DNA of 64,000 bases from Hyphochytrium catenoides (Eukaryota; Protista; Hyphochytriomycota). The translations under genes were made by a program, and so were the position numbers. Under the pieces are notes generated by a model, which was not told the origin of the DNA, made no database searches, and was given only the letters and a program-made list of their open reading frames with translations. The stretch spans positions 1-64,000 of the forward strand of contig FLMG01000350.1 in NCBI GenBank assembly GCA_900088475.1, written 5' to 3'. Positions 41,325 to 44,300 of this stretch are shown here, piece after piece (positions within the stretch are counted from its first letter, which is position 1; each line of letters opens with the position of its first letter).

Positions 41325-44300
41325 TTAGAGCTTGATAGGCTGTAGCAGCTCAAATCCGCCTGTTCCAGCGGGAACTGGCTGGCCTAGCACTATCTTCGCT
41401 GAGGGAGACTTCAGATCGTCGTACATGCCCTGCAGAGTGGCAGCCGTCAAGAACTTCATTGTTGTCTCGAAAGTCATCTGCAAAAATGGTGATGGGTTGT
41501 TGGCCATGCCTGCCCTGTTCATTGGCGTGTAATCTCCTCCAAAGGTCATGTAGTCTGCGATGAGACTGAGGTGCCGAGGATCTACGCTGATGCCGTACAC
41601 CCCAAACACAGCCGTGATCTGCCGTGATATCAATGCTCTGGCCGCTTCAACTCCATAAGTTATCAGGACCTAAGAGGAGAGCTTAGATAACAGCCCAGAG
41701 TTCTGAACATGGCTGACGGTACCTGATATATGTCGTTTGTGTCAAGTCTGTTGACATCTAAATAGTCACTGAGCTCCCACATCTTCTGGAAGTTGACACC
41801 TTGAGTCTGTAGGCAAGTAACGTCTACGCCTACGCACAAATGTCAGCATACAGTTTTGAGAGTGATATCGCCTAGACCAATCTTACCATCAATCTTCTGG
41901 TCGACAAGGAAGCATTGCTTGATACCCGGACTATGCCGAACAAGTACTAGGTCTGCCGCTCTCTCCACCAATCCAACCATCAGTAGCTTGCGGAACTGCG
42001 AAGGCAGCTGGAGCTTGATCTCTGCCCATCCCTCTTCCCTATTATACAGGCACGTTGAGAAGTACTTATTCCGGCTGGCACTGTGTGAGACCTCGAGGAC
42101 CACGGTACTTTTATCTGGAAAGAACAGAAGAGTGGGCTTAAGTCTCTAAAGCAGCTCCTCATGTAGGGACAACAACCAACCTCCATAACTCGCATTTTTC
42201 TTCGGTGCATCATCAAACCCAACTTCCTGATCTGGGTCGCTGATCGTATCATCTAGCGAAGGCGCCATGCGCGCCTTGGAATGGCTCTTCTGAGATTTCT
42301 TTGGTGCTACAGCGCAAAGACAACCAACCGACCGTCAACCATCTGGAGGTTCCTATTAGGTATAGTAGTCATATACCTTCATCGTCCTCGTCATCCGTAA
42401 GACGGTCTACCGCCTTTGAAGCCTCATGCTGGATCTGTACATCCTCTTCGTCCATCTCACCATATCCCGCCATCTCATTTTTACGGCCGAACCGTAAGGT
42501 TCCTGAAGGAGGCCTATAAGTGAAGCCAAAAGGCATAGTACGCAATTTTTCATCACCTTGTTCCTCATCATCTTCTTCATCATCTGCCTGAACTGGCTTT
42601 TTCCTGGAAGCCCTTTCCGCCTGAATTGCCTCTTGTGCAGGTGTAGCCGTTCCAACAGCAATATCTCCTGCCCTCTTGAGCTCCATATTGATGATGGAAA
42701 GAAGCTTCGGAAGGAAGAGAAATCCCACGGCATGCATGATGTCATCGTGGTCCACGTCATGCGCCTTAGCCAACGTCTTCATTGGGAAGAAGTTCAGCCT
42801 TATGACGTACTCTCGAACCCATAAAGATTCTAAAGGGCGTCAAGACATGGTCAGTCTTAAAAGAATGTCAAAGCTAGGCTGTGAGAATACTTGGGGTGAG
42901 TCATTCTAGCAATGTCAAGAACCCTTTCGCTCTTGTCACAAGGAATAGCTCGTTAGATGTCTAACCTATATCGCCTCGTTGCTTCAAAGTTTCCTTAACG
43001 ATGGTCCCCAGCTTTAGTGACAATAATTCCTTCAGCCGCAGCCTGCGGGATCCATTCGTCAGAGCAAGAGTAGGAGGAGGGACTACAACAGTAACTAGGG
43101 CATGCTCCTGGGCACCTGTAGAGTTGACGAGTTATCCTGTCCGCTTCCTTCTTAGGCACCCCGGAAGCCAAGGGGATAGTCATTGATGGTGTAGAAATTT
43201 TTTTGCTAGCGGTCATGATTATCTCTCGTAGCCGTGGAATACCTACAGGACGTAAGGGTAAAGGTGAAAAGAGAGGTTCCTAGAGCACAAAGTTCTGCAT
43301 AAATAGAGAAGACACGAGGTTCCTTCAGAGCGTATATTAGGTGCACCATCAGTGTGCATCAGGAGCAAAGGTTTTCCTCATAGGAACTCGTGGACTCGCA
43401 ACGGGATGAAAATAAAGCAAATATGAGCAGAAAGAAACTCCTTTGTGATCCCTCAGAGCGTATATTGAGAACCTCATTCTGGCGTCAGAGATCTTATGCT
43501 TTCCGCATTGGGATGACATTCGAAAGCGTTGCAGACAACTAATAAGATCAGAGTTGGAAATTGGGGGCTTTAGAAAGAGCAACTCGATGTCACCCTTCCG
43601 GGCCCCTTAAGCAGAAGCTGAGAGCACCCTTACCAAGCGTGACATTAGCCCCTCCGTGGCCAGCCAAATGGAAAGTATTCAGAGTCATCTGTGTTGAAGG
43701 CTCTCCTACACTCTGGGCAGCAATAATTCCAACGCTTTCGCCCGGCTGAGCAAGGCTTCGCATGTACTTGACCCACATTAGTAGCTCAAACCCCATAGGA
43801 GAGACCAAGCCCTTCGGCTGCATGGCGTCCTCCTCATTATCGTCGGACGTCTTCTTCTTCTTCTTTTTCTTTTTGTTCTTGAGCGGCACTGTATCTAAAA
43901 GCCCATGAGGATTCTTATTGATATATTCCCGAATCTTTTCTTGCATTGACTCAGAGACCACTCCGACGTTCTTGGACATGTCATGCGTGTGCATGACTGG
44001 ATCAGGAAGAGAAGGCCTGACAATGTCGATAACGCCTGACATACACTGTCCGCCACCCTGCACCCTGCTTCCTTTGCTCTTCACCTGCCTTGGGACATCG
44101 AAAGCTTCTTCTCCTGTACCGAAGTTCAGCCGCTTGTTAGGACAATACAATCGTAGGAATATAGAATGAAGTTCCTAGCACATGCTAATCAGGAGGAAAG
44201 TAGGTCAGCGAGTTATTACCTGTGTCGGTGTAACGTATTCCTAAGGTTCCCTTTTCTGGATCAGAGCTGATAATCTCTGCTGGGTACCATCCTGTCATCA

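Follow-up and report, generated by a model that had tools for sequence, protein, structure and literature searches.

The sequence analysed was a stretch of 64,000 nucleotides (nt) from the genome of Hyphochytrium catenoides (assembly GCA_900088475.1, contig FLMG01000350.1, positions 1 to 64,000 of the forward strand), referred to here as the window. On its reverse strand lies a gene that encodes the largest RNA polymerase I (Pol I) subunit, one intron of which carries two units, A and B, that resemble small nucleolar RNAs (snoRNAs) of the box C/D class and share a guide complementary to conserved 18S ribosomal RNA (rRNA). Pfam searches located Rpb1 domains 1-5 across the exon open reading frames (ORFs) of this gene, the exons being searched one by one and not as a joined spliced protein. 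Because the best Protein Data Bank (PDB) matches of a single exon were to RPA190/RPA1 at 2e-62, as against approximately 1e-30 to 1e-35 for the Pol II, Pol III and archaeal subunits, the host is identified from its sequence as the gene for the catalytic largest subunit of Pol I. The intron has exact GT-AG ends (GT at 43633/32, AG at 43244/43) and interrupts the conserved peptide NVTLG/IPRLREI at the position of the slash. These matches and intron ends bear out a preliminary description of the window, which had set both units within a Pol I largest-subunit intron. The remaining introns of the host measured roughly 70-250 nt, as judged from gaps between tblastn matches, and the 391-nt intron is likely the longest in the gene. 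The features of the locus are as follows.

41331..48962 (extent approximate), reverse strand: host gene of the RPA190/RPA1 type, with many short exons (Pfam, PDB matches and tblastn exon map)
43243..43633, reverse strand: GT-AG intron of 391 nt, phase 1 (sequence reading and ORF translations)
43444..43518, reverse strand: unit A, 75 nt, box C/D snoRNA-like (sequence reading, fold, relaxed architecture scan and alignment to unit B)
43502..43508, reverse strand: C box of unit A, AUGCGGA, non-canonical, with C instead of A at position 4
43485..43488, reverse strand: D' box of unit A, CUGA, 13 nt after the C box and preceded by a probably orphan 13-nt D' guide
43471..43477, reverse strand: C' box of unit A, (A)UGAGGU, separated from the D' box by a 7-nt loop
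43453..43466, reverse strand: D guide of unit A, AAUAUACGCU, 10 nt (43466-43457), with the D box CUGA (43456-43453); exact 14-mer match
43313..43392, reverse strand: unit B, 80 nt, box C/D snoRNA-like (SNORD105 model match, minimum free energy fold and strict architecture scan)
43375..43381, reverse strand: C box of unit B, AUGAGGA, with G3 and A4 intact and G for U5
43359..43362, reverse strand: D' box of unit B, CUGA, 12 nt after the C box and preceded by a probably orphan 12-nt D' guide
43346..43351, reverse strand: C' box of unit B, UGAUGG, separated from the D' box by a 7-nt loop
43325..43339, reverse strand: D guide of unit B, UAAUAUACGCU, 11 nt (43339-43329), with the D box CUGA (43328-43325); exact 14-mer match

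Anatomy of the two units

A terminal stem, together with C, D', C' and D boxes at correct spacing, was found in each unit, as had been proposed, although the C box of unit A is defective. The features that define the box C/D class in addition to the C box, namely a D box with a terminal stem, internal D' and C' boxes and an rRNA-complementary guide 10 nt or more in length, were present in both units, and the spacings between boxes were alike (12-13 nt between C and D', 7 nt between D' and C', and 15-18 nt between C' and D). The terminal stem of unit B comprises 10 base pairs (bp) with one bulged G (5' strand CACGAGUUCC, 3' strand GGAACCUCGUG) and was recovered by the minimum free energy fold, and that of unit A comprises 5+3 bp with one C.C mismatch (UGUCAUCCC/GGGAUCACA). 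The C box consensus (RUGAUGA) demands G3 and A4 for its sheared G.A pairs; both are retained in unit B, whereas unit A lacks the latter. The two units are separated by a spacer of 51 nt. The 3' splice site follows 70 nt after the end of unit B, a distance that is classically optimal for C/D snoRNAs in introns; unit A lies approximately 200 nt from the same splice site.

An architecture scan of both strands, which called for a C box, suitably spaced D' and C' boxes, a D box and no fewer than 4 bp of flanking stem, recovered only two sites in the 64-kb window, these being units A and B, the former with a relaxed version of the scan. The full architecture occurred in none of 100 simulated 64-kb windows generated with a first-order Markov model (Markov-1). 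When the D' and C' boxes were dispensed with and a stem of at least 6 bp was required, unit B was the sole site within the window. The covariance model of SNORD105 (RF00584) aligned end to end with unit B (43313-43393) at 29.2 bits with all boxes covered, giving an E-value of 4e-4 in a 651-nt search (cmscan, Rfam 15) and 5e-3 in an 8.5-kb search.

The shared guide and its predicted 18S target

Comparison of their sequences indicates that units A and B are clearly homologous duplicates. Their local alignment had a z-score of 10.4, and its score was reached by none of 300 shuffles; none of the other intron segments resembled the units to a similar degree (z <= 2.3). Overall identity was approximately 57%, and the D' and C' boxes were not in register in a MAFFT alignment. 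The stems differ in sequence with pairing kept in both, and the D' guides have diverged. The 14-mer formed by the guide and the D box (AAUAUACGCU-CUGA) was identical at 14/14 positions and, because this identity is held by otherwise diverged duplicates, the D guide appears to be under selection, in agreement with the preliminary description. Exactly two copies of this 14-mer are present in the 61-Mb genome, both of them in the Pol I intron. One-mismatch and other near matches of the guide elsewhere in the genome were rejected, being without box C/D features.

Starting from the nucleotide that adjoins the D box, the D guides form perfect Watson-Crick pairs with the conserved 18S sequence AGCGUAUAUU(A), over 11 bp in unit B (-13.2 kcal/mol) and 10 bp in unit A (-11.7 kcal/mol). 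Both guides matched the same position of the 18S in 16/16 diverse eukaryotic ribosomal DNA (rDNA) contigs with no second conserved site, these contigs being drawn from environmental sources with those from human-associated bacterial assemblies left out, and the antisense relationship that had been claimed is supported. A 22-mer around the target also had exact matches in more than 82 eukaryotic rDNA sequences that contaminate bacterial assemblies, none of them treated as human, and the surrounding stretch is a common primer site in the literature; as judged from these sequences, the target stretch is near-universal in 18S. We infer its presence in the 18S of H. catenoides itself. As a separate observation, the more than 82 records with the exact 22-mer are filed under bacterial or archaeal genomes (L039-L118) and represent contamination by eukaryotic rDNA, with an identical 7682-bp rDNA contig recurring in many Streptomyces/Nocardia 'NPDC' assemblies.

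Because pairing begins next to the D box, the fifth guide position faces the U of AGCGU under the D+5 rule, which is the base that had been predicted. This base corresponds to U647 in human and U598 in yeast, the U54-modified G being human G644. The human and yeast methylation maps do not, to our knowledge, include this U, and no report of Um647 in 18S was found in the literature searched. In Arabidopsis numbering the predicted base is U602 (the stretch across the site being AAUAGCGUAUAUUAAAG), with the U54 site 3 nt to its 5' side, as previously stated, and the SnoR115 site 2 nt to its 3' side. The Arabidopsis RiboMeth-seq map records 18S methylation at U582 (SnoR77Y), G599 (U54), U604 (SnoR115), U615 and A623 (U36), and U602 is not included in it (PMC8053127). 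Because the neighbouring G599 and U604 are snoRNA-methylated in Arabidopsis, this stretch of the 18S is accessible to C/D small nucleolar ribonucleoproteins. The main text of a Dictyostelium study gives no site at the equivalent 18S numbering. The comparison of sites covered Arabidopsis, human, yeast and Dictyostelium.

We consider it probable that the two units are box C/D snoRNAs derived from the Pol I intron that guide 2'-O-methylation of 18S rRNA at the U of AGCGU. Under this model, the intron of the spliced Pol I pre-mRNA would be debranched and trimmed by exonucleases to a core protected by Snu13, Nop56, Nop58 and fibrillarin. The guide upstream of the D box would then pair with AGCGUAUAUU(A), such that fibrillarin would be placed at the nucleotide opposite the fifth guide position and the U of AGCGU would receive a 2'-O-methyl group. 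Expression and ribonucleoprotein assembly of the units and methylation of the 18S are steps that we infer from sequence. For unit B this combination of snoRNA and target is well supported by sequence features, and for unit A it is plausible.

Evidence against a methylation guide, and alternative readings

Several observations weigh against this interpretation. No Rfam family matched at its gathering threshold anywhere in the window; the 29.2 bits of unit B fall below the SNORD105 gathering score of 45, and indeed below every gathering threshold, and unit A was without any Rfam match at E <= 10. The Rfam comparison suggested in the preliminary description thus gave a resemblance to a C/D family for unit B, albeit below threshold, and nothing for unit A. 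Binding of 15.5K/Snu13 requires the kink-turn's second sheared G.A pair, and the AUGCGGA of unit A breaks this pair, a point that had been overlooked. The guide duplexes are short (10-11 bp) and AU-rich, at the low end of functional guides. The D' guides of both units had no consistent rRNA target in the 16 eukaryotic rDNA contigs and are probably orphan. The nuclear 18S, 5.8S and 28S genes were absent from the 61-Mb assembly when it was searched with 18S and 5.8S models and three conserved 18S/28S patterns, the sole small-subunit rRNA gene in it being of a bacterial, organellar type with large insertions in its 3' half, located on the last contig (C4759, 9001-13811).

Related organisms provided further evidence of this kind. 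A search with the flanking exon retrieved, as nearest relatives, brown algae and uncultured eukaryotes at no more than 56% identity. The phase-1 intron at NVTLG/IPRLREI, which falls in the trigger-loop region of RPA1, was found at the same position in two uncultured eukaryotes (L012 and L016, 44-52% identity), where it measures 68 nt (L012:4091-4158) and 274 nt (L016:4874-5147), with no snoRNA at the homologous position in either, and the Ectocarpus record (L015) has no intron at that position. The conservation of the intron in relatives, which had been put forward as a check, therefore extends to its position in the two uncultured organisms but not to a snoRNA inside it, and does not reach Ectocarpus. 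One metagenome scan for a C box followed, after 28-58 nt, by the guide and D box returned 18 matches, approximately the number estimated by chance, none of which had a terminal stem, and no convincing homologue was present among them. A compost contig (L033) had the perfect 14-nt guide as well as C, D' and D boxes, yet it lacked a stem and is ambiguous; a similar candidate (L028) was rejected as unconvincing, and Rfam returned nothing for either contig. From this one scan, it is plausible that the guide is lineage-specific.

Among the alternatives, it is a real though tentative possibility that unit B alone is functional and that unit A is a decaying duplicate, in which the A-to-C change at position 4 of the C box would block kink-turn formation and Snu13 binding, so that the RNA would be degraded along with the intron. 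The contrast between AUGCGGA in unit A and AUGAGGA in unit B is in keeping with this, as are the lack of any Rfam match at E <= 10 for unit A when unit B scores approximately 29 bits, the shorter and mismatched stem, the guide of only 10 bp and a distance from the 3' splice site that is beyond the usual optimum. However, unit A is otherwise intact in its D, D' and C' boxes, spacing, stem and guide despite approximately 50% divergence elsewhere, which argues for long-term selection on this copy also, and the altered C box could reflect a recent change, a tolerated one or an error of assembly. Judged by these sequence features, unit A may have weak activity or be a copy that was disabled recently, whilst unit B, with all canonical features, is very probably active.

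It is unlikely that the units are genuine C/D snoRNAs with another main role, whether directed at a small nuclear RNA, tRNA or mRNA target or acting as a non-methylating chaperone of pre-rRNA folding. The short, AU-rich guide duplex and the orphan D' guides would be consistent with such a role, as would the fact that the predicted site is unmapped in Arabidopsis and, so far as is known, in human and yeast. Conversely, the sole element conserved between the copies is the D guide with its D box, which matches the near-universal 18S perfectly from the D box onwards, and the adjoining 18S positions are bona fide targets of plant snoRNAs.

A still less likely alternative is that the main product of the intron is a single snoRNA-capped RNA of approximately 205 nt (43518-43313), similar to the snoRNA-related long non-coding RNAs (sno-lncRNAs) of mammals. 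Two C/D units situated 51 nt apart in one intron would suit such a product, given that mammalian two-snoRNA introns yield sno-lncRNAs; however, the spacer was without significant structure or conservation, and the intronic or polycistronic clusters of plants and many protists are processed to individual snoRNAs. Lastly, a chance resemblance with no stable RNA produced, although it would agree with the lack of any Rfam family at gathering threshold, is scarcely credible when two such architectures lie within 130 nt here as against 0/100 simulated 64-kb windows, and when the units are duplicates that keep a conserved guide complementary to conserved 18S.

Known snoRNAs and other Pol I host loci

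The most immediate comparison for a methylation guide at this site is with U54 (SNORD54), likewise a box C/D snoRNA with a D-type guide over the same conserved 18S stretch (AAUAGCGUAUA). Its register (...ACGCUAUU-CUGA) puts the G of AAUAGCG at position 5, whereas the guide of units A and B ends in ACGCU-CUGA and is 3 nt off. U54-type Rfam families gave no match at E <= 10 (651-nt cmscan, Rfam 15), and no guide in the U54 register was found in the genome at up to one mismatch, other than matches at chance level. The plant SnoR115 targets a U (Arabidopsis Um604) in the same stretch, 2 nt 3' of the predicted site, but in a register shifted by 2 nt, and a guide of this type (...UUAAUAUACG-CUGA) was absent from the genome, with chance-level matches only. 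Descent of the units from U54 by retargeting, as had been suggested, cannot be shown from these sequences; the missing U54-type guide would fit a replacement and simple absence equally well, and the lack of both U54- and SnoR115-register guides would agree with an ancestral guide having shifted its register.

SNORD105, the best and sole meaningful Rfam match, shares ACGCU-CUGA with unit B and is identical to it at 10 of the last 13 guide positions. The site guided by this snoRNA, 18S Um799, lies in another sequence of vertebrate type (AGCGUUUACUUU), whereas the guide described here consistently matched only the AGCGUAUAUU site in the 16 rDNA contigs and not the U799 region, and the resemblance as seen in sequence is probably due to similar target sequences rather than orthology. 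A 40-nt hairpin-like element was also observed on another contig (L008; C1317:72482-72495, reverse strand), with a 7-bp stem GAAAGCU/AGCUUUC around UUGAAAC...AAUAAACGCU-CUGA; its guide-like end resembles that of SNORD105, and the element is too short for a normal C/D snoRNA.

As regards its organization, the locus resembles plant intronic snoRNA clusters and mammalian sno-lncRNA loci, in that more than one snoRNA would reside in an intron of a protein-coding host linked to ribosome biogenesis, but it differs from them in its host, as no account of the Pol I largest subunit as a snoRNA host came up in the literature searched. A second such host was identified in a distant, uncultured AT-rich eukaryote (L124; European Nucleotide Archive ERZ19026225 scaffold_853), where a Pol I largest-subunit intron of approximately 1.3 kb (5137-6455, forward strand), located between the exons of domains 2 and 3, carries four box C/D candidates on the gene strand.

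5410-5485, forward strand: candidate 1, matching snoZ221/R21b (34.5 bits, E 4e-5)
5753-5828, 6114-6189 and 6229-6316 (approximate), forward strand: candidates 2-4, with 7-8-bp terminal stems and one common D guide (...CCCUGUGGUA-CUGA)

The candidate at 6114-6189 is an exact duplicate of that at 5753-5828. Because this cluster is present, whilst four further RPA1 loci contained no convincing snoRNAs, the Pol I gene is a recurrent but not a general snoRNA host. This independent second case suggests that the link between the guides and their host is not a one-off. A wider proposal, in which the Pol I largest-subunit gene would be a recurrent and perhaps ancient snoRNA host in this part of the eukaryotic tree, tying the guides to the enzyme that makes pre-rRNA, and would in addition give rise to the snoRNA-capped nucleolar RNA of approximately 205 nt and to a new 18S Um site, strikes us as rather improbable in its entirety.

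The units are ordinary in kind and leave the general understanding of snoRNAs unchanged; what is new is two snoRNA genes and a site unmapped in the model organisms compared. Units A and B would supply a stramenopile lineage with two snoRNA genes and a predicted site of 18S 2'-O-methylation; no snoRNA catalogue for stramenopiles was found in the literature searched. The arrangement has a tidy co-expression logic, in that an rRNA guide would ride in the gene of the rRNA polymerase. If the predicted site is correct, a six-nucleotide stretch of the 18S would be methylated at different positions in different lineages by way of small register shifts of similar guides.

The host gene itself displayed one further peculiarity, eight consecutive lysines and then an acidic patch (43845-43870, reverse strand), which form an insertion immediately upstream of the trigger-loop motif in a Pol I exon.

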